Both the position numbers and the translations under genes were made by a program. From the NCBI GenBank assembly GCA_964035545.1, contig OZ037765.1, positions 8,628,698 to 8,692,697 of the forward strand: a stretch of 64,000 nucleotides of DNA, read 5' to 3'. Position 1 is the first letter of the stretch; each line of letters begins with the position of its first letter. Shown here one piece after another: positions 7,201 to 64,000 of this stretch. Source of the DNA: Bugula neritina. Taxonomy: Eukaryota; Animalia; Bryozoa. The notes below the pieces were generated by a model. The model saw nothing but the letters and a program-made list of their open reading frames with translations, had not been told where the DNA came from and did no database searches.

Positions 7201-10200
7201 TTTTACAATTCATTACAAATGAATAATCTAATTCATAAACAGTGATTGAATATAAAAAATTCTCACGTCTGAAAGGTCATCAAGGTCAGATCGAGAGTTG
7301 GACAATGTTTCTGCCGAGGAAACGCTAGGGGTACCACCTGGAGAGTCCCCAAACAGCGGGAAAAAATGCTCGGCGTGTTTGGGGTTAGTGACATCTAGTC
7401 TATCAAACTGCAGCTGTTTATCAACATCCGGGCTTGCCACATCTACAACCATCAAAGTAGTTATGCTAACATAATATATGTAATAATGGCAGCAATATGT
7501 ACTTAGTTTTAGTGTTTTTACAAAAAGTTTTCTCATTTGCTGATTAATTATATATATAACAAATACTATACATTTAGTAAAATGAAACCTGGCATTCTAT
7601 TGTACAGAATATACTTAACGTATTATTGAGGGCTATTTAACACACAACATATATGTGCATGTGCGTCTGCGTACGTGCATCAAACGAGTGTCAGGTGTCA
7701 AACAAGTGTCAAGTGTCAAATAAGTGTCAGGTGTTCGAAACCTTGCACATCACAAGATTTAGAAAGCATGAATAACAAACCTGCTTCAGGTTTGGTCATA
7801 ATATGTGCATGTCCACTATCAGAACTGAGTTGATCCCATTGGACAGGCTGAGGAGTAAACACATCCATGCGTGAGAGACGAGGGGTGCTCACATCCGATA
7901 TGTATGCATCAGTTGGAGCATTAGACATGATCTCAGATTCCTCTTCTTCCTGAGGTAAGAAACATTCAAATACTTGTAGAATAACATATAAATATTGCAT
8001 GCTAATAATAGGCTGCATATAGAACAGGAATTATTATGTAATCCTTTAAAAAATCCCGAGTCAGTTTTAACTCTTAACCATTTTACTACCATAATCTGAC
8101 CAAAAGCTTATATGTAGAAAAGCAAAAACTGGAACTATTAGAAGACACTGCTATCCATTTGCAACAAGTTCACAGTTATAACTAGCCAATCAACCTAAGT
8201 TTATGTAACACACAGGCACAAAATTCCTGCACTTCAGACAGATGAAAAAAATAAAATCAGCAAAGTTCTTGAATTCAGCATCGTTCATTTCCAAGAAGTT
8301 TTGTGTCCACACGTAAAGCTTTTGCAAAATTGCATTTGAAATCTTTTGAAATACACATTTAGATATTGAAAATAGCAGGTATAAATTTCTGTATAGACTT
8401 CAAATTCCTAAAGGGTAAAAATGACATATTTAGTAACAATCAGAAATGTACAGTTAGTAGTAAACTGGGTTTCATTTAAATCAAACTTATCAAATCCATT
8501 TTAATAAAAGTAATTTTATTTATAAAATCACTGGAAGATAATAATTAATTTCAACGATTATTGAAACTAAAAAATTCAAAACTGTTTAAAACTGAAATAA
8601 AAAATTACCCATACCTTTTCTCTAGTCTGCGGCCTTACTACAATATCTGTAGCTTCCAGGAAGTCTTTCGTAATATCTAGTTCGTAAGGTTTCTAAAGAA
8701 CACAATGGGGCTCACCAGTCATAATAAAAATAGAAAGAGATAGAGGTTAAGTTCAGGGAAAGAAAACGCTATAAACATAAACAGACACTCACTAGATAAT
8801 TTGAAAGATCAAGAGGCTCTAGGTTTGGCATGACTCCTTCACTGGTTACAGCTGGATCTTCATAAACATCAGACTCTGCAGTAATACTCTCAGCATAAGT
8901 GCTGACACCATACTCGTCTAGGTCTGGTAGCACTAAGGAAAGAATACAACAGCTCATCATGAAAAATAGTAAACTTGTACAATTTTGTAGAATAAATATT
9001 ATGAATAATTTTTTTTCAGCAAACTTACAAGAGTTGAGGCTGATAGAGTATATGTTGTTAAGGAAGCCAAAAACCAAGTCTCCAGTTGAGTTGAGGAAGC
9101 AAGCACAACTCAGAGTATTGTCTAGCGTGACGTCTGCTATCACACACTGATCTCTAACGGACCATATCTTGATTACACTGTCACGGCTATTAAAACAAAA
9201 AACAGTACCCATCAGTTGGAGCATTAAACATAATCTCAGATTTCACTCCTTCCTAAGGAGAGGAATATTTAAGTATTTGTAGAATAATATGTAAATATTG
9301 CATGCTTGTAAGCTTGAAGATATGCTAGTCAGTTTACAAAAAAAAAGAATTCTAAATCTGACCACCTTGTTTTCAAAAGAAATCTACACAACAATGTTAC
9401 CCGCAGGATAAGAAGAGTTTCTTTCTTGGGCAACAGTCAACACTACGGATGGCGTCTTTGTGTTCAAACTTCTTTTGCACCAGTTGACTTTGCTTGAGTT
9501 CTGCTATGTTCTTGATTTGATTTGTACGTCTGTTGATGTTATCTTCGTCTATTTCTTCCAAATTGTGAAAACTAACAGCCCCATCACTGTATCCATAAAA
9601 TACTGTATCACCCTATAAAAATAATGTACAATAATATATAAATCTTTCTTTAAAACAAATCATCAATTTGAATTATATATGAAAAAAACTCAAATACAAG
9701 ATACAAGCAATAACAGTGAGTAGAACGGCTAGCTCTATCTAAATTTTTTATTTATCTAAACATAACAATATATAACTACCATTCGAGTGCAGGTCACAAT
9801 GTCTTGGAATAAACAAAGCTCATGCTGAAGTTGAAGAGTGGGCAGACCGAATATCTGGACAATGGCAACTTCATTTCTATCACACTGTACTAGAAGCTGC
9901 TGGGTGTCTTTGTCATGTCTTATATCTCGAATCTTTAAAATATGATAATACTAAACAGTTAACTCAGCAGTCCCTGTGGTGTAATTGGTTAGCGTGCCAG
10001 CCTGCAAGCCGGAGGTCTATGGTTCGAATCCCAGTGGGGGCAATTATTTTACATATATAAGACTATATCACTGCATCTACGTGGTTATTGGTTTACAATA
10101 ACGCTGTAATGCTTACACAATGAGAGGGTTCTGCAATAATAACATTCACTATAATATATAAATAGAAGACTGTTTCTAAATGTGCGTGTTTAATTTTTCA

Positions 10201-17968: not shown

Positions 17969-20234
17969 GGCACTACTGAAAAACAATCAAATAATGTGCC
18001 TTGAACAATGCCTAAGTAACTATAAAGATTCATTTTTTCAAGTTCACAAAAAAATATTGACATAACAAGGTTTCTCAATCTATATAAGAGTTGTGTTTAG
18101 TTGATAACATGACTTGTTGACAAAGATCTCCACATGCTAGTTACAAAAGAGGTTTGTCAACAAAAAATTCACCCAAAAACTGAATACATTTTGTTCATTT
18201 TACTACACAATATAGATTTGGAAAAAAATAATAAAACAAAAGATTAGATCTAAAACAATGTGTTACAATAAATTTTAGTGTTTCCATAACAAAGATTCCT
18301 GATTCAAACCATATAGCCTATTTTTTACTAGTTCTGTTGCATGATCACAAAGTCAGATAAATAAATGAGTCATTAGCCAGCAGCTGCTGTAATATGAAGA
18401 TATATTTGTTGTAATCACTATAAAGATATATCGTATGCATCATTAAAATAAAAACCCGGATGCTAAAATCAACATATTTGCTGAAAGCTTGTGCTAGATC
18501 AGTAATTTATTTTTTTGAAACTCTGCAAAAAAATTGTGACAAGTTAGTCAATATATAGCAGTGCTTCAGTAGTAGTTTGTATTATTTAAAGCCTAAGCTA
18601 AAATTATCATCAAGCTTATATGGACATGATGATAATAAATTAAGATGATTAAGCTATTCTACAAATACAATATCAAAACAGCACATCCAGAATAAAAATA
18701 AGACTTGAAGCAAAAATGACAATTATTAAGCGGCTAGCTATTCTATTGCAGCTTAAAAGTTATATTCAATCTTGATATAAAAATGTACAATTGGGTTACC
18801 ATATCGTTAGTAACATTTCCAGTTTAATTGATAGTTGAGTCTGAAATGTGCAGACTAAAGTACTTGTAGCTTGCTGAAACTGCTAAAGTGGCTTTTTAAA
18901 TGATTGACTTGATATTTAAATTATCACTATATTAAAAATATAAGCTCCAAGCTACTGCCAACAAACAATAAATGTTCAGCATTTAATATTGTAGTTATCA
19001 CATGCTTATGCATAGCTTAAAATAATCTGAGCAGCAAATAGAATACTAAAAAATGTAGCACAGAGCCAACTTGAATGATAATCATTATGATTATTTTAAC
19101 TCTAAGAAAAGTTTATATACTAAAATAGATCAGATCAGTCGCAAAATTTATTAGCATTATGATAATAATTTCAGGTATAACTCTTTGAATCATAAATGTA
19201 AAATTCAACTTTTTCAAGTATTCATATATCACAGCATTCGATTGCATTTATTGGTTGAACATTTTACTTTGGTAGGTTGAACTTGAAGAATGGAGCTATT
19301 TTAAAGTATAACTATAAGTGTAATTATATCATTATCTGCCCTGCTACTAAGTATAAAACAATAAGCTTAAATAAATAATGACCACTGTCATTTACTTCAT
19401 ATTTTAGTTTTTAAAGTTACTTGTACTACTATTATTTTTAGTTTTAGTTTCAGAATCATGATGATGAATATAACTATAAGTTTAAAATAGTTAAAATTAA
19501 ATACTTTTCAATACTAATAGTAATAGTAATAAGCAATTTAGAATGCTTTATATCTGTATTGTAACTATTAAAAAAAGCTAGTTTACAAATACAGTACTTG
19601 AATTGACACTTGCACTGCACATAAGTTGTGTCGACAGAAAATTACATCGATACATTCAGTGACTTTAAATAAAAGATTCGTACTGATACTCGAAAGTCTG
19701 CGGCCATACATCATGGTTGTGGTCGTCAATGAAATTAACTGATGATGCACGGCAATACCAGCACTACCAATAGCTAATTGAAAAGTATAAAATATAAGCA
19801 TCACGACTATTATTTTACAGTAATATAAAATGCAGTTAAATTAAAAAACAAAACTATTTATTAATAAAGCAGAGAATAGATTCAAAATGATAATTCTGTA
19901 AAATATGATTAATACGATAAATTGTTGAGGAACTGTTCTTTGAGACTAGGAACAAGAAAACAATACTGGCGCGTACTTTTCAATCCTATTTGTTGTGGTG
20001 CGCTGCATCATGGTGATTCCCTCATAACTTTATAACTTTATGTTTTAAGTTATTGTATCAATATAATTCTTCTCTTTTCTTTAAAACCACACATGGTTGC
20101 AACCTTCAGGCTCATGGCAATAGTTACAAATAAAATACTTAATATTTTTCGACTAACTCAACAATACTTATACTATTAGTATTACTATTGCAGTAATACT
20201 AATAGTAATAGTAATAATAGTAATACTATTAGTA

Positions 20235-20365
20235 ATAGTAATACTATATTACTGATAGCAATACTAATAGTAAGACTAATACTAATACTAATAGTAATAG
20301 TATTACTATTAGTATTAGTATTAGTCTTACTATTAGTATTGCTATCAGTAATATAGTATTACTAT
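20235..20365. repeat. Perfect inverted repeat: 65-bp arms, 1-nt spacer (G20300)
   Basis: 20235-20299 is the exact reverse complement of 20301-20365, checked base by base. Confidence 0.9.
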
Positions 20366-21073
20366 AACTATTACTATTACACTTAGTCTTAGTCTTACAG
20401 TAATTATGAAGATAGTCATACTCATACTCGTAGTCATACTCATAGTGATACTGATACTCTTAGTCTCGCACTGATGGTCTTACTCTTAGTGATAGTGACA
20501 ATCAGTATCACTAGCAGTATCACTATCAGTATTAGTATGAGTATTAGTATTAGTAACTTGTAACGTTAGCCTTTATGCAGATGATACCCTCTTATATCAG
20601 GAAGTCAACTGCTACGAGGAATCGGTGGAATTTCAAAAAAACATTGATGCTGTACAAGCATGGTCGCAGAAATGGAAAATGCCATTTAACGCATCTAAAT
20701 GCCATGCAATAGCATTCAACAAAAGAAGCCAAACACCCGCGTATAAACTAGGTGATGCTGACATACCTTGGACAGACAAGACTCGCTATCTTGGTATCAC
20801 GCTCCAGCAAGATCTAAAGTTTGACCAACACATCGCTCAAAAAACCAGCAAAGCAACCAAAATTCTTGGGGCTATAAAATACACACTACACTCTGCACCT
20901 ACCAAAAGCCGATTATTGGCATACACTAGCCTGTGTCGACCGATACTGGAGTATGGGGACACTCTATGGGATCCCACCAGTAAACAGACCATTGAATTCA
21001 TAGAAAGTGTTCAACGGAAAGCTGTCCGCTTCATAAGTACTGTTAACCCTTACGCGATCAATGGACCATATAT

Positions 21074-21425
21074 TGTAGTAATTTGTGCAATTACTGAGCG
21101 TGAGTTATTTACTTGCGTATAGTTAGCTGGTTATTCTGTTATCGATTACTAGGGTAGCTGTCGAGTAATTATATTTATTATCCACAATAAAGCATAAACC
21201 AAACATCACATCAAATTATCCTATACAAGAGTCAACTACTAACACATGTTACTACTACAAGCCTCCGCTTACAACAACGTGATATAATGTTAATAACCCG
21301 GGAAGTGTCACGTGACTCGGAAGCATATCTTCCGGAGCTGCTAATTGGTTGCTACATAAGAGTCTAAGTATTCCAAGAATAGGGAGAGGGCGATTCCTGT
21401 ATTTGTACTTGCACTACTCACTACA
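21074..21425 (-). repeat. 3' LTR of element 1
   Basis: Identical by eye to 25985-26336; TG...CA ends; minus-strand AATAAA near 21175. Confidence 0.95.
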
Positions 21426-21440
21426 CCGTCCCCCCCAGCA
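21426..21440 (-). other. Polypurine tract of element 1
   Basis: Minus strand reads TGCTGGGGGGGACGG directly before the 3' LTR; the flanking CCAGCAGAAAGCCCT is shared with element 2. Confidence 0.85.
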
Positions 21441-21715
21441 GAAAGCCCTACTTTCTGATAACACAATAAAAAAACATAATGAAAAACCATACAATAATCC
21501 AAAAAGGAAATATTCATAAGTAAACCCACAAAGAGTAAGAAAAGAAATAGTTAAACACGACAACGTTTACATTAGAAGACAACAGGGTGATCGATCACAC
21601 ACATCTAGTCAGCTATTAAGAGAGAGGGTGCTTACCAGCACGCGGGCCAATGTCGGAGCGCTCGTCACATCCTAAACGAGCTATAGCTCAACGAAGGTGC
21701 CTACCCCAGGCATTC

Positions 21716-22768
21716 TCATTGGTTGGACTCTGCTTCTTGTAGCGACCGTGCTCTGTGTCGAGCCTGTCGGGCCCGTAGCCGCCTCTTCAGTCGTCCCACT
21801 GAGTCTTTCAACTGGTATAGACCTGTCGTCGTATCCAGCAAGTCAGGGGCAAGTTGTGTGAACTCGGCTTGCAGTCTTAGAAGCCGCTCTTCTACGTTAG
21901 CCAGCTGGCTAGGCCTTGGTGGGGTTATAGGGGTCTCCGTTATACGGGATATGGTTGTTTCTTCTACTTCTGGGGTGTTGCTGGGGTTGACGGGGGTAGG
22001 AGGTGGGCCCTGAACCATAGGGGACTTATGGCGGGCAGATAGTAACAGTACGTGAAACCCTGACGTTAGTGCGGCCAGGGTAATAGCCTTCCTGATGACT
22101 GGCTTGATGGCATCCAGGTATAGGGGGAAACTGTCTTCATCAACAGTGTGGTTCTCTCCGGCGAAGCAGCTTAGCTTATGTACTGTCACGGGATACGGGT
22201 AGACGTCGTGGAACCCGCAGGGACAGAAGTGGAGTAGGAAATGGGCATCTACATGTAACCGCAAGGAGCGGTGCGACGGACACTCCTCAAAGCAGACCTG
22301 GCAGGTTCGGTGTGGTCCACTGGGTCCCCAGGCTTCTTCAATTCTCCTCTCTGTCGTGGGTGACACCCAACGGTGTCGTCGGCGGAGTACTACTGGTATG
22401 CCATTCTCCATTACAGGCTCTTCTTCCATAGACAGAGAGGTTGGCTGGTCCCGTGACCGGGAGGTGGTCACTCGAGTGTGATCTGAAAGAGTAGCAGTGT
22501 TAAAGATTATACACTGAGACACCGTCGGCGTGTACAGCCTGACCGGTACTCTGTTCAGTTACACTCGTGAGATTCAGGCTAATGAATAGTTGATGGAGAA
22601 CACACTCGCTATGACAGATTATTTAAAATCAAAGTCGACGTGTATTCCCACCACTGTTTATCATTATCGAATCTCCAGCTAGCTAGTGTAGCTAAGCTGA
22701 CTGATGCAGTCTAGTTATCGTACCAAAAACATAATTAACTCACCCTTCGATCCAGAATAGTAAGACAT
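21716..22768 (-). CDS. Accessory zinc-finger/coiled-coil protein of element 1; predicted exons 22768-22744 and 22482-21716 (263 aa)
   Basis: C-x2-C-x12-H-x3-H (CQVC..H VDA H), C-x-C-x12-H-x3-C, a Pro-rich linker, heptad repeat and basic tail. AAAATG start, G|GTGAGT donor, TCTTTCAG acceptor, phases compatible. The ORF is seen directly; splicing is inferred. Confidence 0.8.
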
Positions 22769-22791
22769 TTTGGAATGAGAGTGGTAACTGA

Positions 22792-25050
22792 TTACTGTTT
22801 ACTGGCACGTCTACTCTCGACTGCATCAACATAGGAAAAGACCGGACAGCGTGGTTGTGAAACGTGACTAGGGCTTTTCACTTCCAGCGGATGAATCTCG
22901 TGTGAGATTCCGCCGAGGCAAAAGTTGAGATTCTCGTGGTGATCACAACTCCCACGGCTCTTTGCCTGTTTTCCCATGCGAGGCCTCTCTAGACTTTTGT
23001 TACTGCCGCTTATACCGCGGTCACGTACACAGTCTCTGAGACACGCTGGAAGTTGCCTAGTGTGTGGTGCTGGTCCTATGTTGGCATCTCCTTGCGGAGC
23101 CCCTCCCACGGGGGGTTTTTGCACTTCCGGACCTGTTTCTGGTTCCGGAAGTGGTGATGATGGCAGGCTTGACGTTGGGGGCGGTGGGCGCACTTTCAAG
23201 GACGGAAGTGGCCTTTCTCGCCTCGCCAAGTCTTCCTGACGTGTCATGGAGGTGTTTCCGGCCAGGTTGACAGTCTCCGCCTGCCGAGACCTTCTCGCAC
23301 AATGCGTCTGCCGCCCCGCTTCACCAGGGAGACGGCTATGCTTGTTGGTCTGGCAGACTTTGCACCGTCTCACTCTGCGTCGGATATCCCGTTCCATGTT
23401 AGGCCAGTACCACCGGAGTTGTAGCTTGGTGACCACCCCTTGGACTCCTCCGTGAGTCTCCTCGTGGGTGTCTTGTATCAACTTCCGGCGGATGGCAACT
23501 GGGCAGACAACCCTCTTCCTGGCTGGCTGTCTGCTGTTGGCGGCCAAGGTCATGGTTAGCAGACCATCTGGCCCGACCCGCAGAGAGCTCCAACGTTGAC
23601 AGTACAGCCGTAACTCGGCGCATCCCTGTCGCCGTTGTGTACTACTGGGTCGTCGCCCCTCCTGTTTCGCTCGGTACACGTCGGCTACCACCCCAGGAAG
23701 GCATTCCTGGAGCTTCGGCAGCTCCCTAACGTTACCAGCCCATACAGGTTTGGCGCGGAGGCTCTGGGCAGCCTCCGGGGGCGTGTCAGCCCTCTGTTGA
23801 AGTGGCTGAGCAGGGGCGGTCCTCGCCGCCCGTGGTACCTCACGGCAGCCTGCTCTATTTAGGCGGGCTCCGTGGTTTGTGTGGCTGAACGCCTCACTGT
23901 ACCCATGTGGCAACCTAGCCCTAACCTGGCGCTTCCCGTTGCCTGTGCAGCCACGCGTCCCTGGAGGGGGGGAGGCGTGGGTTGGGACGGTCCTCCGCCC
24001 TCGAGACGGGCTCTGCTGAGGACCTTCCGTCGTAGCTCCCGACGACGGCCCAATGGCTTCCTCCTGGACAGGATGGAAGTGACCCAGCATGGATCTGGGT
24101 GGTAGGTCTACTGTCTCTGAGAAGGGGTTGACACACTGCACTGAGATCTCTCCTTGCCCCGTGAGCCGGCTAAAACTACGGGCAAGTTGGACTCTCGAGT
24201 GCGTACTTTCGACAACTCCCAACTTAGAGGTTTGGCCACCGTCTACCTTGCAGCGGACGGTAGCCCGGGAGTGGCCTGGTATAGTACAGCTCCGTACTAC
24301 CTGCACTGCTCCCGCTAGAGGACGACCAAACTTATCGACACAAGCGAGCTCCTTGTCGCCCATGATTATCGCAGATTTACTGAAATCAATGCGACAACCG
24401 TGTCGTTGTAAGAATGGCATCCCGAGGATAGCATCCTCGTTGAGCTGCCCGACGATGAACGTCTCTTGGATGGCCTGGCTACGGACGTAACCAGTTAGCT
24501 CAATAATGCCGTAGAAGGGAATGCACGACCCGTCTGCCAAGGTGCCGTGATCCCCCTCGTACGGTGCCAACCTGTCCTTGACCTTAGCGCTGAGGGTGTC
24601 AAAGAACTGACGGCTAAGGAGGTTGGTGGTGCAGCCGGAGTCCAGGAGGAAGTTGGCAGGCTTGCCGGCTAACTTCCCTGGCAGGAAGTAGCTACTTCCG
24701 TGCGGCTGCAGTTGAGTGTGCCGTGGTTGCACCTCCCTCGCTGTGGGTCGAGGGGTCCACGGTTGGCGGCGACTATTGACCAGCTGCCGAGGTTGGGGCG
24801 GTACGCCTTGCGGCGCTTGTACCGTTTCCCTCGCAGGCTCTGTGGTCAACCGTCTGCCGGCTCCGTGTTGGTGCCGGAGTGGCGTAGAGGACCCAGGCGG
24901 CGAGTGGCTTGAGCCTACTTGCCGCGGGGGTCGCCACTTCACAGCATCTCCGCGCGGCGCCCAGCGGGGCGACAGACGCGCGGGCCTCCCTGGGTGATTT
25001 ACAGACGGCCCGCAGGAGGTGGGAACATCTGCGGGCCGGGGTAGTTTAAC
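22792..25050 (-). CDS. pol: Internally deleted pol: aspartic protease, integrase HHCC finger and integrase C-terminal tail; no RT, RNase H or integrase DDE core
   Basis: FLLDSGCTTNLL and AILGMPFL (retropepsin); THEETHGG..WYWPNM..CKVC (integrase zinc finger). No YxDD or DDE core. Lies in the -1 frame relative to gag. Confidence 0.85.
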   Translation of the reverse strand, partial: VKLPRPADVPTSCGPSVNHPGRPARLSPRWAPRGDAVKWRPPRQVGSSHSPPGSSTPLRHQHGAGRRLTTEPARETVQAPQGVPPQPRQLVNSRRQPWTPRPTAREVQPRHTQLQPHGSSYFLPGKLAGKPANFLLDSGCTTNLLSRQFFDTLSAKVKDRLAPYEGDHGTLADGSCIPFYGIIELTGYVRSQAIQETFIVGQLNEDAILGMPFLQRHGCRIDFSKSAIIMGDKELACVDKFGRPLAGAVQVVRSCTIPGHSRATVRCKVDGGQTSKLGVVESTHSRVQLARSFSRLTGQGEISVQCVNPFSETVDLPPRSMLGHFHPVQEEAIGPSSGATTEGPQQSPSRGRRTVPTHASPPPGTRGCTGNGKRQVRARLPHGYSEAFSHTNHGARLNRAGCREVPRAARTAPAQPLQQRADTPPEAAQSLRAKPVWAGNVRELPKLQECLPGVVADVYRAKQEGRRPSSTQRRQGCAELRLYCQRWSSLRVGPDGLLTMTLAANSRQPARKRVVCPVAIRRKLIQDTHEETHGGVQGVVTKLQLRWYWPNMERDIRRRVRRCKVCQTNKHSRLPGEAGRQTHCARRSRQAETVNLAGNTSMTRQEDLARRERPLPSLKVRPPPPTSSLPSSPLPEPETGPEVQKPPVGGAPQGDANIGPAPHTRQLPACLRDCVRDRGISGSNKSLERPRMGKQAKSRGSCDHHENLNFCLGGISHEIHPLEVKSPSHVSQPRCPVFSYVDAVESRRASKQ

Positions 25051-25964
25051 CCTGGTGGGAGTTGAGGGCAGTTTCTCTGGAAATGTCCTGGCCTTCCGCA
25101 TTCCCAGCAGAAGTGGTGCCCCATGTCTGGTGATTGTACCTGCGGCCCGCAAGGCTCACGGGCAGTATCTACCTGGCTTGGGGAGGCTAATGTGGTGACC
25201 AGTTTATCTAGCATGTCAGTCATCTGTGAGATTTTTGACACTAGTGACATCTGGTTCACATTAGCCACCGCGGAGGGTTCCGCATTTACTTCGGTGTGAG
25301 CAGTAGAGTGCTCCGTGGTCACCTGGCGGGAGGCCACGCGGTTGCGGTGCATATGAGTCGCCAAGAAATAGGCTTCTCCCACCGCAAGTGCATCTTCGAC
25401 TGTGGTGACTCCCCTCGCTTGGAGTTGATGGTGGAGCCCCAAGTCGTTGATGGACTGCACGAAGGCATCATAGGTATACCTCTCACGGTGTACCGGAGGC
25501 AGATCGCGGAATGCGATCTGCGCTAATGGGTACACCGTGGCAGCGTGCTCTTCTAGTGACGTGTGAGGATCACGCCGCATCCTCTGCAGACGGGCCCGCG
25601 CATCTATGGGAGAGATGCCAAAACGGGCCCGCAGGGAAGCAAAGATTCCGTCTATGTCAGGTCCAGCTCCGTACGGCTTAGCTTTGCCCGTCAGCGCCAT
25701 CCTGAGCTTTAGCAACGCCACCCTTGGCGGCCATTCTGCAATCTCCATCACATCTTGGAATTCTTGAATAAACTGCTCCACTGCTTCTTCGCCAGTGAAG
25801 GTGGGCGCCTTCAGCCGGTATCTATCTTCACCATGCCCTCTAAGAATTCTCACTTCTTCATCTAACACCACTGGTTCCACAGGTATATCAACATTATCTC
25901 TCTCACCTTCATTCAGTGGAATGGGTAGCTCCGTGCCGTCTTCTGCCATGACTGCTATACGCAA
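24999..25964 (-). CDS. gag: Gag with C-terminal CCHC zinc knuckle
   Basis: KAPTFTG..VEQFIQEF..W..LRMALTGKA capsid-like motifs; CWECGRPGHFQRNC knuckle; begins just after the PBS (first ATG near 25949). Confidence 0.9.
   Translation of the reverse strand: MRIAVMAEDGTELPIPLNEGERDNVDIPVEPVVLDEEVRILRGHGEDRYRLKAPTFTGEEAVEQFIQEFQDVMEIAEWPPRVALLKLRMALTGKAKPYGAGPDIDGIFASLRARFGISPIDARARLQRMRRDPHTSLEEHAATVYPLAQIAFRDLPPVHRERYTYDAFVQSINDLGLHHQLQARGVTTVEDALAVGEAYFLATHMHRNRVASRQVTTEHSTAHTEVNAEPSAVANVNQMSLVSKISQMTDMLDKLVTTLASPSQVDTAREPCGPQVQSPDMGHHFCWECGRPGHFQRNCPQLPPGLNYPGPQMFPPPAGRL
25006..25050 (-). promoter_or_regulatory. Predicted -1 ribosomal frameshift cassette (G_UUA_AAC plus stem-loop)
   Basis: Heptamer at 25050-25044 in the correct gag phase, 5-nt spacer, perfect 10-bp stem CGGCCCGCAG/CTGCGGGCCG (25038-25029 / 25015-25006). 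Confidence 0.75.
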
Positions 25965-25965
25965 G

Positions 25966-25983
25966 ATCCCACCGCTGCCACCA
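25966..25983 (-). other. Primer-binding site, tRNA-Leu type
   Basis: TGGTGGCAGCGGTGGGAT begins 1 nt after the 5' LTR and is complementary to the metazoan tRNA-Leu 3' end (ATCCCACCGCTGCCA-CCA). Confidence 0.85.
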
Positions 25984-25984
25984 C

Positions 25985-26336
25985 TGTAGTAATTTGTGCA
26001 ATTACTGAGCGTGAGTTATTTACTTGCGTATAGTTAGCTGGTTATTCTGTTATCGATTACTAGGGTAGCTGTCGAGTAATTATATTTATTATCCACAATA
26101 AAGCATAAACCAAACATCACATCAAATTATCCTATACAAGAGTCAACTACTAACACATGTTACTACTACAAGCCTCCGCTTACAACAACGTGATATAATG
26201 TTAATAACCCGGGAAGTGTCACGTGACTCGGAAGCATATCTTCCGGAGCTGCTAATTGGTTGCTACATAAGAGTCTAAGTATTCCAAGAATAGGGAGAGG
26301 GCGATTCCTGTATTTGTACTTGCACTACTCACTACA
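25985..26336 (-). repeat. 5' LTR of element 1
   Basis: 352 bp, identical by eye to 21074-21425; adjacent to the PBS. Confidence 0.95.
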
Positions 26337-28658
26337 ATATGTCCCTGAAAGCGACACTATCCACAGATCAATGGACCATATATGGTCTTTTAGGTAAACA
26401 AACAATAGCGCTTACTTTAAACTTCCAGTTTTCAACCGAAAAGCCTAAAACTTTTTTGTAATTGAGGTTGATAGGGCAGCTTAGTAACTATGGAATAATT
26501 AGAGCCATTAAATTTGATTAAATTAATAGCTACCAAGCCAGCTAGTTGCTTTTCAATTTAATCCTAAAATTTCAAAATTGTCGGTAAATTTTAACGCTAC
26601 TTTCAAATGCATGAAACTGCTGTCAAATTATAGAGAGCCAGTTTATTTTATTCAGATTACATTTAGAAGATTATCTAAATAAACAGAAATGTTAAATTCA
26701 CTATATTTTGAATCATATTATAAATTAATTTTATCATTTTGATTTTTCAATTTTAAAATAGCGGTTTTGAGAGGCAAATTAAAATGACTGATTTTAGCTA
26801 GAATTGAGGTCTCCTGTCACTTTAAGAAGCTTTTTATAAAAGAAAATACTCTTAAAATTATAATACCCAGTTTAATTAAGGCCAAAATCAAGTGTAACTT
26901 TTTAATATTGAAATTGAAAGTTATGCAAAATTTGTTAGCAAATTTCGCGATAAACTCAAACGAGGCTTGAAATTACGTAACTTCAAAGTTGATCGCCAAA
27001 GGGTTAAAGGACGGGAAAGTGTCACTGAAGCCAGAAATCTTCTTGAACTGGTACCACTAGAATCCAGAAGACGAAACCATCGAATGACATTACTACACAA
27101 AATTCTAGAAAATGAAACCAGCAATAATACTTTATCTTCTAATTATGATGAGATCGTCAACAACCGCTTAAATACAACTATGACCACTAGAGCTGCGAGC
27201 AGAGGACAGTTAACATCAATATCTGCAAAGACTAGTGTCTACCACAACAGCTTCCTTCCCCGAACAATACGGGACTTGAGAATAAATGTTCATGAATAAT
27301 TAGAAAAAAAATCAGTGACATGCTGATTCACTGCCTACCCACTGTAACACACTGTTATAAACGAGGCATTTAACTTACACATTTTTGTGATATCTAAATG
27401 TTCTATCGACACAGAATGTGCCATCAGAATCACACTGTGACATTGTGAGTGTCCGTGATTCACTGTGACTGTAAATTCTTTATTATTATTTAATTTTATT
27501 ACTCATAAATTTGAAACTGTAACTTGAAGTTAAACTTACTCTTAGGCATTTAATGATTGATATTATAATTATAATTATACTGACAGTAACAGTAATAATA
27601 ATATTAATTATAGTTCTACTTATATGTATAACCATAGGCATAAGTCTATGACTAAGAGTAAGTATAATTAAAACTCTAAAATTAAAACTATTGTAGTAGA
27701 TTTTGGCTGTAAATATTATTAATGTTATCTTCCCTGCAGTACTTTGTAGTCTTGCATATTATTATCATGCCTGTGGGTAATAGTTGGCTGTGTACTAAGA
27801 TGCATTTAGCCGTTCATATCTAGAATCTTCTTTTACTTTTTCTTTGTTCTTATACCATGTAGTGGGTAGCGGGGTAGTTATGTATAAGCCTGGATCGGGC
27901 TAGTCTAGAACTTTCTATAACTTCCATTGTTCATGCATATGGGATTGCTTTCTATTGGTTAGTTTGTAAATAATGATGCAGTCCATATGGCGTGATGAGC
28001 TCCCTGGCAGACGCCCGAATTCGGCAGAATTGGATGCATGAATGTCGATTCGGGTATCCGATTACTCTGATTGGGACTCTTATTAGATTTTCGGACGCCC
28101 CAAATGTGCTGATTCGGCATATTTGAACGCCCAAATCGGTTACCCATCTCAGAATGAGACTTTCCACTCATATATAAGTGAGGTGGAATGCCTCGGTGGG
28201 TGAGTAGGGCCGGAGCTGCGCTTAGTGACAGTACTCTCTTTATTATTACATGTTGTTATAATTACCTTTTGGTGGCTACTCTATTGTAATGAGTCAGACA
28301 TGGGCTCTATAATAAGCAAGTCTTCAATACATTTTATCTGACTGGCAAATCTCGTCTTCTCTCTCATACTCTTTGGCAAAGAGCTCTTATGTTCTGGTTG
28401 TAGCATCAGCTTCTTGTGAATCTCCAGTGATTTTATAACCCTGCATTCCCTCGCAGGATAAAATTACTACACTATTCGAGTAATTCAAATATAAAATTGA
28501 AATAACTGTTTTCATGCTGAAATTTACTGTGTTTTACAGTATAATTATAATGATTAAGTTAATTGAAATAGCTTTTTACGAAGCATCAATAATAACAATA
28601 TTTGTTTATTTTACAGGCAAAAAACTTACCTTAATCATAACTACCTAATAGAATTCTA

Positions 28659-59500: not shown

Positions 59501-60894
59501 CTATCTCTTTCTTGCTTGACACAATCTAATTCATCTTGTAGCTCCAGTTTCATTCTCACCTTCTCCCCTTAACATAATTATTCTACATATCACATATAGT
59601 ACATTATGAAGGAAGGCAAACAATGTCTTATAAATGTGTCTGCATAATACTAGAATGTTCTTTTGACAACTGCTGTTCTCCTGTATAATCTTGGAATCTG
59701 TTTTACAGCCACCTTCAGGTTTTTTTAATAATGCACAATTATTACAAGTGTTCTACCACTGAAGTCTAATTACAAAAATGTCAGTATAATATCATACTGA
59801 TAAAAAATATATTTCTTGTAGTGTTTAATTCACATATAACCTTATGAAAAAGTTCTATCATTGTCACATATAAAAATTATGTTTTAAGCTGTGAAAGTTA
59901 TAATGAGATAGATTTTTTATATTTACTTTCTTCTTCTGTTAGTTTCTGGAGAACTTTACTTTTTTCTGCAGTTCTCAGCTCCAAACTTGCATCTTTTCTT
60001 CTTAATTCAAGATGTAATCCATCAATTTCAGATTGTAGAGCCTGAAAAAATAATATACTGTGTTTTAGTACAACTAAAAGCATTACGAATTAACAATTAT
60101 AAAAAAACCAAAAATATGATTTACAATAAATATTAAAATGATTGTCAGATTTTTATAAGAAGAGGTGAAACTATAAACATGTTATATAGTAATGAGAAGA
60201 TTTGAAGTGTTTATAGATACTGTTATTTGTTTGTAGATAAAAAAAGAGTGCCCATACTCAGTAGGCTATATGCTGGTTACTATAAAAAAGAAACTTTAGA
60301 AGATACTAATCTTTACTGTAATTTATTAGATTTGGTTATGATTGTGTAACTACCCTAAGTTTAGTTAACATTCGCTCTGCTTCTGCAGTCATTACTGGAT
60401 GGAGGTCCGTGGCTTTTTTTGCTTGCTCTCGCAAGTAATTCGATTCAAGTTCCAGAAAATACACTTGCTGCTGTAAATTCTTGATATAATCATTTTCAAT
60501 TTCTTTAAGCTCTGCTGACCTGCTGAAACTAGTACCAAGTTTTCTAAAACACAACACATATTAATTTACTAAACAAAACTAATACTTGCATTTCTTGCTA
60601 AGATATTGACATATAGCATGCATGTTTATCACAACTTAAAATAGCAAGATACCCGGATTGACTCTTTCTCAGATCTGTTTTGCTTGGTTGATACTCAATA
60701 GATTTGTTTAAAGGAGAAGGGGTTCTGCCACGGAGAGAATCTTTAAGTACCCCAGCAGATCTACTCCTGCTTCTGCTAAGACGAGGACCGCTTTGACTTT
60801 CATTTGGAGAACGCAATGTTGTTTTCCATGTTATAGCTGTAGGCTCTTGGTCAGTACCTAACATAGGTCGAGTAATTTCTCTGTTGATTGACAT
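56583..60894 (-). CDS. Multi-exon coiled-coil protein, family not identified
   Basis: Exons approx. 60894-60653, 60543-60354, 60042-59926, 59568-59383, 58755-58600, 58293-58132, 57813-57657, 57255-57087, 56807-56583. Heptad-rich E/K/L/Q sequence (e.g. ENDYIKNLQQQVYFLELESNYLREQAKKA); minus-strand AATAAA near 56358. Confidence 0.85.
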
Positions 60895-61894
60895 TTTCAC
60901 CTTTAAAAAAGGTTAATCCTACAATGAAAGGGTAAATAAATTTAATACAAAAAAACTAATAGAAATACAGATGTAAGCAATAATGATAAACATAAGACAA
61001 TTGTCAATTACAAAAGAGGAAATTTAGCTATGACAAGTAAAATATATTGATACAGACATAAACATATCAATTACTTGAACATGCTACAATATATCTATCT
61101 ATTCAATTTCGTATAATATCAAAAAGAAAAATAATAAAAAACATTCTATTATATTTTTACGTAACAAAATTTAATAATGATAATAAATCCCACAAAAAGT
61201 GGTAATATAAACTAAAAAGTATAGCTAAAAACTGCCCAGATTTTTGCTTGTCTGCTACGTACTGCAAGACCTTAACAAACTAGTTAAAAGTGCAACACCA
61301 GCAATATGCATATTGTTATGATTTTCAGTTTTAGGGTTGATGTGCCACCAAGAGAGTCTATTTATCACTAGAGAAACTGCACCGAGTTAAGTCGAGTAGA
61401 TATCGTTATATTTTAATACAAGAATACATAATAAAATCTAATGTACAACAGTAATGATACGCACGTCTATTTAATTTACAGCACTATCCTCAACTGAGCT
61501 AGTAGCGCGAAGCTGCTACTATTACTCATAAAACAGCCTAGCTAATTGGCTAATACATTGTTCCGGGTCAATACGCAACCTTGCGTATTGTGTTGCTGGT
61601 AGCTCCACGAGCCACCACACTGCCCCCTCCAGCAGAAAGCCCTCTTTCTGATAAAAATAAAATTCACATAAAAAAAATGTATACTTCGTTGGGGGGGGGG
61701 GGAAGAGAACAGTATAAAAGTATATACAAAAAAAACAAACAACCAATGAAATATACAGGTATATATAAAACGTGCACAATAAGTAATAAGTAAGAGAAGG
61801 TCCTATCTACAGGTAGAGTACGTGCCACCATAACGGTAGGGAATGCCACAGAGAGGTAGGGGAAGAGTAGTATGGAGTTGGAGATAGACTCAAG

Positions 61895-63024
61895 TTAACT
61901 GCGTGCCGCACGCTTCATGCGTTTAATAGACTCCTGTAAATATTTGAGTTCACTGGATGCAGCCTGTATCCGTGGGGCCAGCCTATACACTTCTTGCTCC
62001 AAGTCGTGTGCCCTAGCTTCTACTTCACGTAGGTTGCGGGCCCAGGGGGACGAGCGAGAGGAAGTCGGCTGTCTGTGTCTTTTCCGCTCTGAGGATGGAA
62101 GGGGAGGAGGGAGTGTATACGCATTCGTGTCTACCCTCTGTAGTACGACACGAGGAAAGGTATGCGGCATGCGTAGAGGACTGTGAGGTGGAGAGTTAGT
62201 AGACTGTATAGGTTTATCTGTGGCTCCAGAGATGATGGGTCGCGGGGAAGGGAAGCCTTGCTCCAGGCGAGATAGCCGAGCTGAGTCAGTGATGAGTGGT
62301 TTGATGGCGTTGAGAAATGCAGGATAGGATGATTCGTCTACTTCATAGACATGTCCTTGATAACACTGCATAGTACGTTGGTGACGCAGTAGGTAATCAC
62401 GATTGTAGCTATATTCTCCGCAAGGGCAGAAAGTGGTGATGTAATGTTGCGGCAAGTGTACTTTCAGTCTGCGGTGGGTTGTAAATCGCTGCTGGCAGAG
62501 GTTACATTCGCGATTACTTTCACCTCCTTGATGAGTCCTAATCTCCCTCTCTGTGGCAGGGGTAATCCAGTTGGAGGTTGCTTCCAACTGGGGTGGCAGT
62601 TGCCTGGTTGTAGAAGTTGTTGGGGCCGGCTCTGGGTCTCACGCCATCTCTAGAGAAGGCATGCCCGGAGAGACGGGCGCGAGTGTGTCTACAAAAGTAG
62701 AATTATTGTTAGATCGCGGTGGATCTTTACAACATAATTCTAGTGACTGTCGACCGTTGCTAGCCTGAGAGTCACAGCTTTTGGAATGCACTCGAGGAAC
62801 CGATGAATCATGTGTGGACTGACCAAGAACAGTGTCTAGCTCCAGGTCTAACAGACCGTCGGCCATTACAGTGTCTTCATCGTCATTCACATGAAACGTG
62901 GTTCCCAGTAATTCTGATTCAATCTGCTGAATTAGTTCAGAATTTACTGGCATCGAGCCCGTTTCCATGAATAGGAATACAAGACTTATACTGGCTTACC
63001 TGGGAACTCGGTATTAATGTCCAT
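61895..63024 (-). CDS. Accessory zinc-finger/coiled-coil gene of element 2; predicted exons 63024-63000 and 62688-61895, with one in-frame TGA at 62641-62639
   Basis: CNLC-x12-H LPQ H, FCPCG-x11-H..C, VDESSYP..L.AIKP and a C-terminal heptads/basic tail align with the element 1 ORF. G|GTAAGC donor and TTTTGTAG acceptor. Confidence 0.75.
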
Positions 63025-64000
63025 ACTCAACGTTCTTGGTAAGATTGGAGCTGGTTGTGAGATACGTCTGCCTTTGGCAATGTCAGCATAAGAAAAGGCT
63101 GAGCATCGTTTCTCAGGCACGAGGTCGGAACTATTTGCTTTACGCGCATTAATTCCTCCCACTATTCCGCCCTCGCAAAAGTTGATATTTGCGTGGGGTT
63201 CACAACTCCAACATTTTATCGTACGGTTTTCCCCTAGACTTTCATGTGCGCCGCTTCTAATGCAGTCACATACGAAGTCTTTTAAATATGGTGGGGGTTT
63301 CCTCGTACGCTGTCCCCTTTCTAGGGGGGGTGACACGCTTGCCGGTTCGTTAGTAGGGGCCTCTAATGGCGTCTCTACTTCACCGTTAGCGGTCACCTCT
63401 TCTTGTTCTCCGGATGGAGCCCCTCCCTCCATGGGGGTTTGCACTTCCGGAATCGGCTCGGTTTCTGGAAGTGATGGAATTAGACTTGGCGGTGGCGGAC
63501 ACGCTTCTGTTGACAAAAGCTGCCGCTCCTCTCTCACCAAGTTTTCTTCCCGCGGTATGACCACTTCGTATTCAGGTCCATGCCGCCGTCGCCCGCGCGT
63601 CGTTGTCTGCCTCCTGGGCTCTAACAACGGGGGGGCTTCTCCCACTCCGTCGGGGCTAGCCCAATACGGTTTCAAGCGAGACTCATTCTGGATAGACACC
63701 TGTCCTGAGCGCTCGATCTTGTACGTATGATTGGGCATAGCCTCGACGACCACGTAGGGCCCTACGAACTTAGGCTTCAGTTTATCAGCCTGTCCGCGAC
63801 GCCTACAGTAATTGACCATCCACACCTTATCTCCCGTTTGATAGAGAGGTGGTTCATCGGAATCTTCGTGCCGCACCTTCCACTGCTGTTGGCGCAGTAT
63901 ATCGTGTGCGGCCTTCATCCGTTCCACTAGTTCACTGGCATACTCGTGAACCGAGTTGTCTTGCTCTGGAACGTGATAGGTGAGATGGTCAGGGACACGA
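62986..64000 (-). CDS. pol: pol, integrase C-terminal part (partial; open to the window edge)
   Basis: YQTGDKVW..KLKPKFVGPYVVVE..HTYKI (GPY/F module) and RTRKPPPYLKDFV; the tail is homologous to the end of element 1 pol. Confidence 0.9.
   Translation of the reverse strand, partial: RVPDHLTYHVPEQDNSVHEYASELVERMKAAHDILRQQQWKVRHEDSDEPPLYQTGDKVWMVNYCRRRGQADKLKPKFVGPYVVVEAMPNHTYKIERSGQVSIQNESRLKPYWASPDGVGEAPPLLEPRRQTTTRGRRRHGPEYEVVIPREENLVREERQLLSTEACPPPPSLIPSLPETEPIPEVQTPMEGGAPSGEQEEVTANGEVETPLEAPTNEPASVSPPLERGQRTRKPPPYLKDFVCDCIRSGAHESLGENRTIKCWSCEPHANINFCEGGIVGGINARKANSSDLVPEKRCSAFSYADIAKGRRISQPAPILPRTLSMDINTEFPGKPV

Follow-up and report, generated by a model that had tools for sequence, protein, structure and literature searches.

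A 64,000-nucleotide (nt) stretch of the genome of the bryozoan Bugula neritina (contig OZ037765.1, positions 8,628,698 to 8,692,697), referred to below as the window and numbered from its first base, is AT-rich, with ~32% GC, and contains two GC-rich islands. Both islands are long terminal repeat (LTR) retrotransposons on the minus strand, and each carries behind pol a third open reading frame (ORF), called ORF3 here. The ORF3 proteins of element 1 and element 2 share 29% identity (E = 2e-28), and because this identity is so low the elements represent two distinct families with a common accessory gene. ORF3 is a predicted accessory gene of two diverged Ty3/gypsy-type LTR retrotransposon families, where the Ty3/gypsy-type label rests on the LTRs, the primer-binding site (PBS) and the polypurine tract (PPT), on the CCHC gag and on the protease-to-integrase (PR...IN) order of domains, the reverse transcriptase (RT) region of element 2 lying beyond the window. 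Taking the two elements together, Pfam identifies, in the PR...IN order, an aspartic protease, an integrase H2C2 domain and a Tf2-type SH3 tail, in addition to the CCHC gag. An earlier reading of this DNA (the original prediction) held that ORF3 starts in both elements with a conserved, ATG-bearing mini-exon of 25 nt, joined to the remainder of the gene by removal of a short spliceosomal intron. Here we describe the two elements and ask how ORF3 is likely to be expressed.

Element 1 spans 21074-26336 (minus strand) from LTR to LTR. Its 5′ LTR (25985-26336) is 352 nt long, has TG..CA ends and is 100% identical to the 352-nt 3′ LTR (21074-21425), and a 4-bp ATAT target-site duplication borders the copy at 26337-26340 and 21070-21073. 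With an identical LTR pair, element 1 was mobilised recently. The PBS at 25966-25983, TGGTGGCAGCGGTGGGAT, presumably resembles the 3′ end of tRNA-Leu. The gag ORF (24999-25949) starts at ATG 25949 and encodes a CCHC zinc knuckle, and the 786-codon pol ORF (22792-25152) encodes only a protease and the integrase H2C2 zinc domain. Neither RT, RNase H nor the integrase core was found when all frames of element 1 were checked, and this is therefore an internally deleted, non-autonomous copy. The main exon of ORF3 (21716-22482), with 255 codons after the junction Asp, is intact, so that a non-autonomous element with identical LTRs can be annotated as having kept gag, protease and ORF3 whole. Between pol and ORF3 lies the 25-nt mini-exon of the original prediction (22744-22768), which encodes MSYYSGSK-G and begins 23 nt past the pol stop in a frame that differs from that of pol. 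It is followed by the donor-like hexamer D2, GTGAGT (22738-22743; 8/9 consensus positions when the exon side is counted), and by a 261-nt spacer, the proposed intron (22483-22743), which is non-coding and has stops in all frames.

The spacer ends in recognisable acceptor signals, with a branch-like CTTTAAC (22505-22499), a pyrimidine tract and an AG at 22484-22483. To see what proteins carry at this point, ORF3 exon 2 of element 1 was searched against a large protein collection, which returned 134 homologues of 50-72% identity, nearly all of them from JGI/ENA/Logan assemblies. The junction is covered by 32 family-1 homologues, and 31 of these continue upstream as unspliced DNA would, with the pattern [FL][SL]/D[HY]TR. 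The exception is P0010, an environmental relative (64% identical) encoded on a 5.3-kb contig, whose protein starts MAEEGTELPIPRNE/DHTRLT and thereby joins 14 gag residues to ORF3. Twelve of these 14 residues are identical to the gag start of element 1 (MAEDGTELPIPLNE), and P0010 leaves gag for ORF3 exactly at the element-1 acceptor, 22483/22482. A junction-focused protein search with P0010 residues 1-45 matched P0010 itself and nothing else.

A closer look at the gag start of element 1 shows a matching donor. Gag codon 14 is followed by a strong donor, D1, with the sequence GAAG/GTGAGA (25907/25906), so that the gag-start exon segment (25907-25949) is 43 nt long and comprises 14 codons plus a G. 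D1 is in phase 1 and has a terminal G, as does the mini-exon donor, and joining it to the AT at 22482 therefore restores the same Asp. The corresponding intron would run from 25906 to 22483, a length of 3424 nt, and the 261-nt spacer forms its 3′ end as well. The idea of a spliceosomal entry into ORF3 is therefore upheld with respect to the acceptor, which lies where it was predicted and is used in P0010 at an in-frame junction bounded by GT..AG, but the partner joined to it is the donor at the start of gag.

Conservation around the acceptor agrees with this. The residue ahead of the junction is S, L or V, all with N-Y-A codons, within otherwise conserved blocks of both families, and 48 of 51 relatives, again drawn from both, have Asp at the junction itself. 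The residues around the site in ~50 relatives fit a conserved YAG/G, and in family 1 sequence conservation extends from the junction onward. From the P0010 junction, with these alignments in support, we take the acceptor of element 1 at 22483/22482 to be real. Element 1 has no ATG until 18 codons past the junction, and the Met found there is I or T in several relatives. The proposal that splicing explains why these ORFs start at non-ATG codons accordingly applies to element 1 and family 1, where ORF3 has no ATG of its own, and not to element 2, for which a different cause is given below. We also note a large subfamily (MFSDYTR...; P0008, P0011, P0012 and others) that carries an ATG three codons upstream of the junction, within the pyrimidine tract and in the ORF3 frame, at a place corresponding to ~22484-22492 (minus strand) in the window; in this subfamily ORF3 could be translated from unspliced RNA via the upstream ATG.

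The P0010 protein might instead have arisen by a precise genomic deletion, with ORF3 translation starting at internal ATGs, on RNA that is unspliced or initiated internally. P0010 is a single example, AG/G microhomology is present at both breakpoints, deletion derivatives are common in the family (element 1, P0098 and P0173), and the MFSDYTR type shows that some subfamilies do have an ATG close to the junction. The breakpoints, however, fall exactly on a strong GT donor and on a YAG acceptor with a branch-like site, and the frame is kept; the other deletions of the family, in P0098 and P0173, break elsewhere, and the internal Met of element 1 is not conserved. We therefore regard a deletion as highly improbable. 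In P0098 and P0173 the join lies away from the splice sites and links the pol tail to a point inside ORF3 or to the ORF3 N-terminal domain, and together with element 1 these copies show a family-wide tendency for pol to be lost and ORF3 to be kept.

From the P0010 junction and the matching gag donor of element 1, it follows that ORF3 is probably expressed like retroviral env or like CERV of the Caenorhabditis elegans element Cer1. We propose, with a probability of about 0.68, that full-length RNA is spliced in the style of retroviral env, a donor early in gag being joined to an acceptor that lies a short way ahead of ORF3. For element 1 this would mean the donor after gag codon 14 (25907/25906) and the acceptor at 22483/22482. 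Translation would then begin at the gag AUG and pass, after 14 gag residues and an Asp codon at the junction, into a 254-residue protein with a zinc finger, a coiled coil and an arginine-rich region. Element 1 has the two splice sites expected of an env-type spliced mRNA, one close to the start of gag and one ahead of ORF3, in compatible phases, and the joined product is found, at the protein level, in its relative P0010 only. The original prediction invoked an internal promoter or further upstream splicing to reach the mini-exon; with the gag-start donor, an internal promoter is unnecessary for element 1.

The protein that would be made in this way (element 1) combines a C2H2-like zinc finger with long helices and, at its C-terminus, an arginine-rich helix. 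In the ORF3 alignment the Cys and His residues of a C-x2-C...H-x4-H pattern are invariant and are followed by CPCG. No Pfam family scores above threshold for ORF3, and the only C2H2 matches are sub-threshold, the best PF00096/PF13912 scores being 17.2 bits against a cut-off of 25.2 for element 2 and 14.5 against 25 for P0010; since the pattern is present and the scores fall short, we call the domain C2H2-like only. A PDB sequence search with ORF3 found no relative. The AlphaFold model is of low confidence (predicted local distance difference test, pLDDT, 56.7; predicted template modelling score, pTM, 0.27) and shows a short beta-beta-alpha unit and long helices, together with a C-terminal helix (residues 193-254) that is predicted confidently. 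This most confidently predicted helix carries the nearly invariant arginine-rich C-terminus, KRRLRARQARHR (21716-21790, minus strand), which is reminiscent of the arginine-rich RNA-binding and nuclear localisation motifs of Rev, Rex and Tat. Neither a signal peptide nor a transmembrane segment is apparent in ORF3. It is a reasonable inference that ORF3, like CERV, Rev and Rex, is a regulator that binds nucleic acid and oligomerises, and by analogy with these proteins its probable target is the RNA of the element itself, which it might help to export or handle in the unspliced, genomic form.

Element 2 extends past base 64000, and its pol tail, ORF3, PPT and the start of its 3′ LTR lie inside the window (all on the minus strand). 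The pol tail (62986-64000) comprises an integrase SH3-like C-terminal domain and a family-specific tail, in a frame that is open to the window edge. This ORF passes through the proposed mini-exon (63000-63024; 25 nt, MDINTEFP-G, in the pol frame, followed by a donor-like GTAAGC at 62999-62994) and ends in SMDINTEFPGKPV at a TAA (62988-62986). The N-terminus of a long ORF3 (62690-62968) begins 17 nt past the pol stop, at ATG 62968, and has 93 codons. An acceptor-like block (62688-62713) lies within coding sequence and consists of a branch-like TCTAACA (62713-62707), a pyrimidine tract and TAG/AC (62689/62688). An in-frame TGA (62639-62641) interrupts ORF3 16 codons past the junction, ahead of the zinc-finger ORF, and the rest of ORF3 (61895-62638) encodes the zinc-finger core and the C-terminal coiled coil. 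The PPT and 3′ LTR occupy 61250-61650, with the LTR starting TGTGGTG at 61619; as this is the single LTR of the element in the window, its 3′ end at ~61250 is approximate.

In family 2 the proposed 311-nt intron proves to be mostly coding. A search with ORF3 exon 2 of element 2 returned 38 family-2 homologues, and 11 of them, as ORFs of 317-366 amino acids or fragments, start METG or METD and continue in frame through the whole "intron" and the acceptor-like site, just as the ATG 62968 ORF of the window copy is in the frame of exon 2. The 93 N-terminal codons, from ATG 62968 to the junction, are 59-65% identical between these relatives and the window copy, compared with 50-66% for the zinc-finger core and 25-46% for the linker. 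The 93-residue N-terminal region of the family-2 ORF3 is, by this measure, coding sequence under selection, and since it equals the zinc-finger core in conservation, it cannot be spliced out constitutively. The interiors of the two proposed introns thus differ, being non-coding in element 1 and a conserved ORF in element 2. The TGA at 62641-62639 interrupts only the window copy of element 2, and all relatives are open there; the zinc-finger ORF of element 2 starts at a non-ATG codon because this TGA cuts a longer, ATG-initiated ORF. The acceptor-like block encodes the most conserved peptide block of the region, RSNNNS..D. Since a branch-like TCTAACA, a pyrimidine tract and an AG underlie this peptide, the family-2 acceptor may still serve as an alternative site, and its use may give a shorter isoform.

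The sequence strings on which the mini-exon was based are all present. In element 1 the ATG at 22768 is followed by AAGG/GTGAGT (22744/22743), 261 nt and then CTACTCTTTCAG/ATCACACTCG (22483/22482), and in element 2 the ATG at 63024 is followed by CCAG/GTAAGC (63000/62999), 311 nt and then CTACTTTTGTAG/ACACACTCG (62689/62688). The acceptors read TTTCAG/AT and TTGTAG/AC, respectively, their branch-like sites lie 17-20 nt ahead of the AG, and both mini-exon donors match 8/9 consensus positions. An ATG with a stop-free run leading to a phase-1 donor (at least 8/9 consensus positions) arises in ~1.0% of shuffled spacers for element 1 and in ~1.5% for element 2. Aligned locally as DNA, the two spacers match best at the acceptor block, where their AGs coincide (p ~0.025), and the overall DNA alignment gives z ~1, in keeping with the description of a near-identical acceptor context in otherwise unalignable spacers. 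Two further points of likeness hold in part. The phase-1 junction forms an Asp codon in both elements (GAT and GAC) and is in frame with the zinc-finger ORF in element 1, but in element 2 the frame meets the TGA 16 codons on. The length of eight codons plus a G also agrees between the two. In a protein-level alignment of the pol tails, however, the element 2 Met lies opposite an Ile codon of element 1 (22758-22756), and the mini-exon ATG of element 1 is 10 nt upstream of that codon in another frame; with the ATGs out of register, the shared "8 codons + G" need not mark a homologous position, and in the relative P0198 it is seven codons plus a G. The distance from the post-pol ATG to the junction is 95 codons in element 1 versus 93 codons in element 2. 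The element 1 spacer might, with its similar position and length, be a decayed homologue of the family-2 N-terminal domain, but neither the DNA alignment (z ~1) nor a profile search (E > 0.1) lends support to this view.

An exhaustive HMMER search with the family-specific pol tail of element 2 returned 30 pol tails, most of which end a few codons ahead of the mini-exon Met. Six sequences from at least four lineages contain the block itself: MSYYSGSKG in element 1 (K before, E after), MSYYSGLRG in P0192 (K before, D after), MSYHGWRG in P0198 (K before, E after), MDINTEFPG in element 2 (S before, K after), MSFNTKFRG in P0197 (S before, K after) and MLSNTGFRG in P0182 (K before, K after). The Met and the Gly are invariant in these blocks, whose flanks are barely alignable, and the codon after the Gly is always of the RAN type (E, D or K), as a GT-RA donor needs. 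The first codons of P0002 read back as GTGAGT, and neither the Met nor the GT seems to survive in P0200, a decayed copy with a frameshift. The claim of a conserved ATG mini-exon is supported, at the protein level and in six sequences, as regards the Met, the Gly, the RAN codon and the phase, and not as regards a joined product.

What this block does is less clear, and three explanations can be weighed. In the original prediction, ORF3 is translated in both elements from the mini-exon ATG after removal of the 261- or 311-nt intron, the ATG being reached through an internal promoter or further upstream splicing. A strong donor in the right phase is present in both window copies and is rare by chance; the Met, the Gly and the RAN codon have been kept in six sequences from at least four lineages despite diverged flanks; the mini-exon of P0198 is 3 nt shorter and yet ends in phase 1; the decayed P0200 seems to be without Met and GT alike; and the donor has the phase and the terminal G of the gag-start donor. 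The proteins themselves speak against it. The mini-exon peptide occurs at the junction in none of the 32 family-1 proteins that cover it, and neither the 158 ORF3 homologues nor the junction-focused search, which returned P0010 only, yielded a protein that joins the mini-exon to ORF3, although, as these are ORF calls on genomic contigs, their silence is weak evidence. Splicing of genomic RNA should also yield intronless full-length copies, and none was found among the 31 unspliced-type relatives. The family-2 "intron" codes for protein and matches the core in conservation, which excludes its constitutive removal, and pol ends with the block in element 2, P0182 and P0197. The entire family-1 spacer is similarly conserved (P0002, P0192 and P0198), and conservation of the mini-exon there is therefore weak evidence. 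We consider the model as first put forward doubtful, and the narrower proposal that the block is an alternative first exon or 5′ splice site tentative.

Alternatively, the block may not be an exon at all, but a vestigial or facultative C-terminal tail of pol or a short upstream ORF (uORF) with an incidental GT, ORF3 being reached only through the gag-start splice in family 1 and from its own ATG in family 2. Pol does read through the block in element 2, P0182, P0197, P0192 and P0198. In element 2 the frame of the block stops 17 nt ahead of the long-ORF ATG, the usual layout of a uORF followed by reinitiation. P0182 has the block and the METS start of its long ORF in one frame, and the pol-tail alignment does not place the two window ATGs at homologous positions. 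In most relatives, however (P0171, P0172, P0174-P0177, P0187, P0188 and P0178), pol stops a few codons before the block, which is therefore usually not pol, and in element 1 the block is out of the pol frame with its own frame still conserved. An invariant Gly followed only by E, D or K suits a GT-RA constraint better than a peptide constraint, and the agreement with the acceptor in phase and terminal base would have to be put down to coincidence twice, once in each family. As an account of ORF3 expression as a whole this is possible but uncertain, and a uORF or pol-tail role for the block itself seems to us about as probable as a role as an alternative exon.

A further suggestion is that splicing of the genomic RNA from the post-pol donor to the acceptor fuses Pol to the zinc-finger part of ORF3 wherever pol reads through, the Met being an ordinary residue. 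The pol frame, donor phase and acceptor phase of element 2 are mutually in frame, and the same relation holds in P0182 and P0197, but in element 1 and P0178 pol ends before the block, in another frame. No such fusion is seen at the junction, and those of P0098 and P0173 join elsewhere and are deletions. That the block is a device for Pol-ORF3 fusion is thus quite unlikely, and we think it equally improbable that fusion accounts for ORF3 expression.

Returning to splicing from the gag start, the post-pol donor is most simply accommodated in that scheme as an alternative 5′ exon or 5′ splice site for the same acceptor, or as a short uORF. In family 2, splicing from the post-pol donor would be alternative and not constitutive, and would decide between a short and a long isoform. 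Several points weigh against our proposal. The protein that bears the junction is one of 32 and comes from a 64%-identical relative, P0010, and not from element 1; it may reflect a cDNA or a retroposed spliced copy, or, very improbably, the precise deletion considered above. The gag start of element 2, and hence its donor, lies beyond the window. Splicing from gag leaves unexplained both the translation of the long ORF3 of family 2 from ATG 62968 and the conservation of the mini-exon block. The function of ORF3 is argued by analogy, for a protein with no Pfam family, no PDB relative and a low-confidence model. A more elaborate version, in which the elements run a programme like that of complex retroviruses, would take in the block as well: two ATG-bearing 5′ exons, one at the gag start and one of 25 nt after pol, would be joined in the same phase to one acceptor, family 2 would add an N-terminal domain by intron retention, and several isoforms of a new zinc-finger, coiled-coil, arginine-rich regulator with a Rev/Rex/CERV-like role would be maintained even in non-autonomous copies like element 1. 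We regard this as an improbable, though not far-fetched, extension.

Several other features of the window deserve mention. The PPT of element 1 and its conserved block (21426-21455, minus strand) adjoin the 3′ LTR, and the PPT-proximal block together with the first LTR bases is 81% identical between elements 1 and 2 (21419-21485 versus 61613-61677, minus strand). We interpret this block as a conserved cis element for plus-strand priming or integration. A 22-nt DNA probe from the PPT had exact matches only in two contigs, L001 (Ga0066903_100268082) and L002 (Ga0134128_10180129), which were rejected as chance matches, being 62-63% GC and having no further similarity. The DNA of the relatives was also sought by profile scans, with the family-1 alignment against metagenome contigs and with both alignments against viral and genome contigs, and gave no matches.

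Remnants of a non-LTR retrotransposon lie on both sides of element 1, at 20625-21122 and 26967-27299 (both plus strand). The ORF at 20625-21122 matches the C-terminal part of RVT_1 and is truncated by the element 1 LTR at 21074, and that at 26967-27299 carries a CR1/L2-like tail motif; the insertion site of element 1 may therefore have been in, or next to, an older long interspersed nuclear element. AT-rich arrays of 9/12-nt periodicity (AGTAATACTAAT-like) also flank element 1, at 20164-20569 and 27552-27666. Beside element 2, three successive short ORFs at 59898-60900 (minus strand) encode heptad-like charged sequence and are apparently exons of a host coiled-coil protein gene; a Pfam search with one of the three found no match. 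Elsewhere, a weak Rfam tRNA match at 9970-10042 (plus strand; 32.1 bits against a gathering score of 29), not called by ARAGORN, may be a tRNA-derived short interspersed nuclear element or a pseudogene.

The proposed scheme has close parallels among retroviruses. In avian leukosis virus and Rous sarcoma virus, env starts at the gag AUG, with a donor six codons into gag. In human T-cell leukaemia virus type 1 (HTLV-1), exon 2 of tax/rex is a very short exon at the end of pol that supplies the start codon and is spliced in frame to a 3′ regulatory ORF, and in foamy viruses Bet is expressed from an internal promoter. By analogy, the tax/rex exon is what the mini-exon would be, if used. The HTLV-1 and foamy-virus exons, however, have proven upstream acceptors or promoters and proven junctions, whereas the mini-exon is a candidate exon, and its intron would be only 261-311 nt long and is coding in one family.

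Among LTR retrotransposons, the closest match in layout is CERV of C. elegans Cer1, which is translated from a spliced mRNA: its first exons are in the gag frame, and the ORF behind pol forms its last exon (PMC10309623). ORF3 resembles CERV in its TTTCAG-type acceptor, its Cys-rich putative zinc finger and its coiled coil or leucine zipper, in having no homologues outside its own lineage, and in a genomic RNA that keeps what would be functional splice sites (PMC10309623). CERV differs in being a protein of 517 amino acids encoded by five exons, with about half of its sequence from the gag region (PMC10309623), whereas an ORF3 of the element-1 type would use 14 gag codons and one junction; the likeness is one of architecture. 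In insect endogenous retroviruses, env exons are spliced from within gag, as in the idefix subclade, or from short peptide exons, as in ZAM and Beagle (PMC12992720). As with the env of insect errantiviruses, ORF3 would be a third ORF reached from a 5′ exon through a post-pol acceptor, with the upstream exon supplying the start codon (PMC12992720, PMC4276936). Unlike errantivirus env, ORF3 does not encode an envelope, but a zinc finger, a coiled coil and an arginine-rich tail, and the present elements have a second, ATG-bearing donor after pol. The third ORFs of LTR elements are typically expressed from spliced messages, and in bdelloid rotifers they fall into env-like, GDSL, DEDDy, TM and CC types (PMC5408684). 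Element 1 is like the non-autonomous rotifer derivatives that have lost most of pol and kept ORF3, but a C2H2-like zinc-finger, arginine-rich protein is not among the types described there (PMC5408684).

These comparisons indicate what the two Bugula families may add. A retrovirus-style spliced accessory gene in a gypsy-type lineage is of a known kind; the undescribed ORF3 family is new, as is the possible second 5′ exon. The ORF3 family is without a Pfam entry and is abundant in environmental eukaryotic assemblies, with 134 and 38 homologues for the two elements. For annotation, the family-1 ORF3 is to be read as a gene without its own ATG, and the "intron" of family 2 as an exon. Outside insects (env) and Caenorhabditis Cer1 (CERV), there are few LTR retrotransposons in which the splicing of a third ORF has been worked out, and the present elements, together with P0010, offer a concrete scheme, with a candidate donor at the gag start, a conserved acceptor and, behind pol, another conserved block that resembles a donor. 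The divide between "complex" retroviruses and simple retroelements lies in accessory genes and regulated splicing, which is why the scheme, if correct, is of interest.

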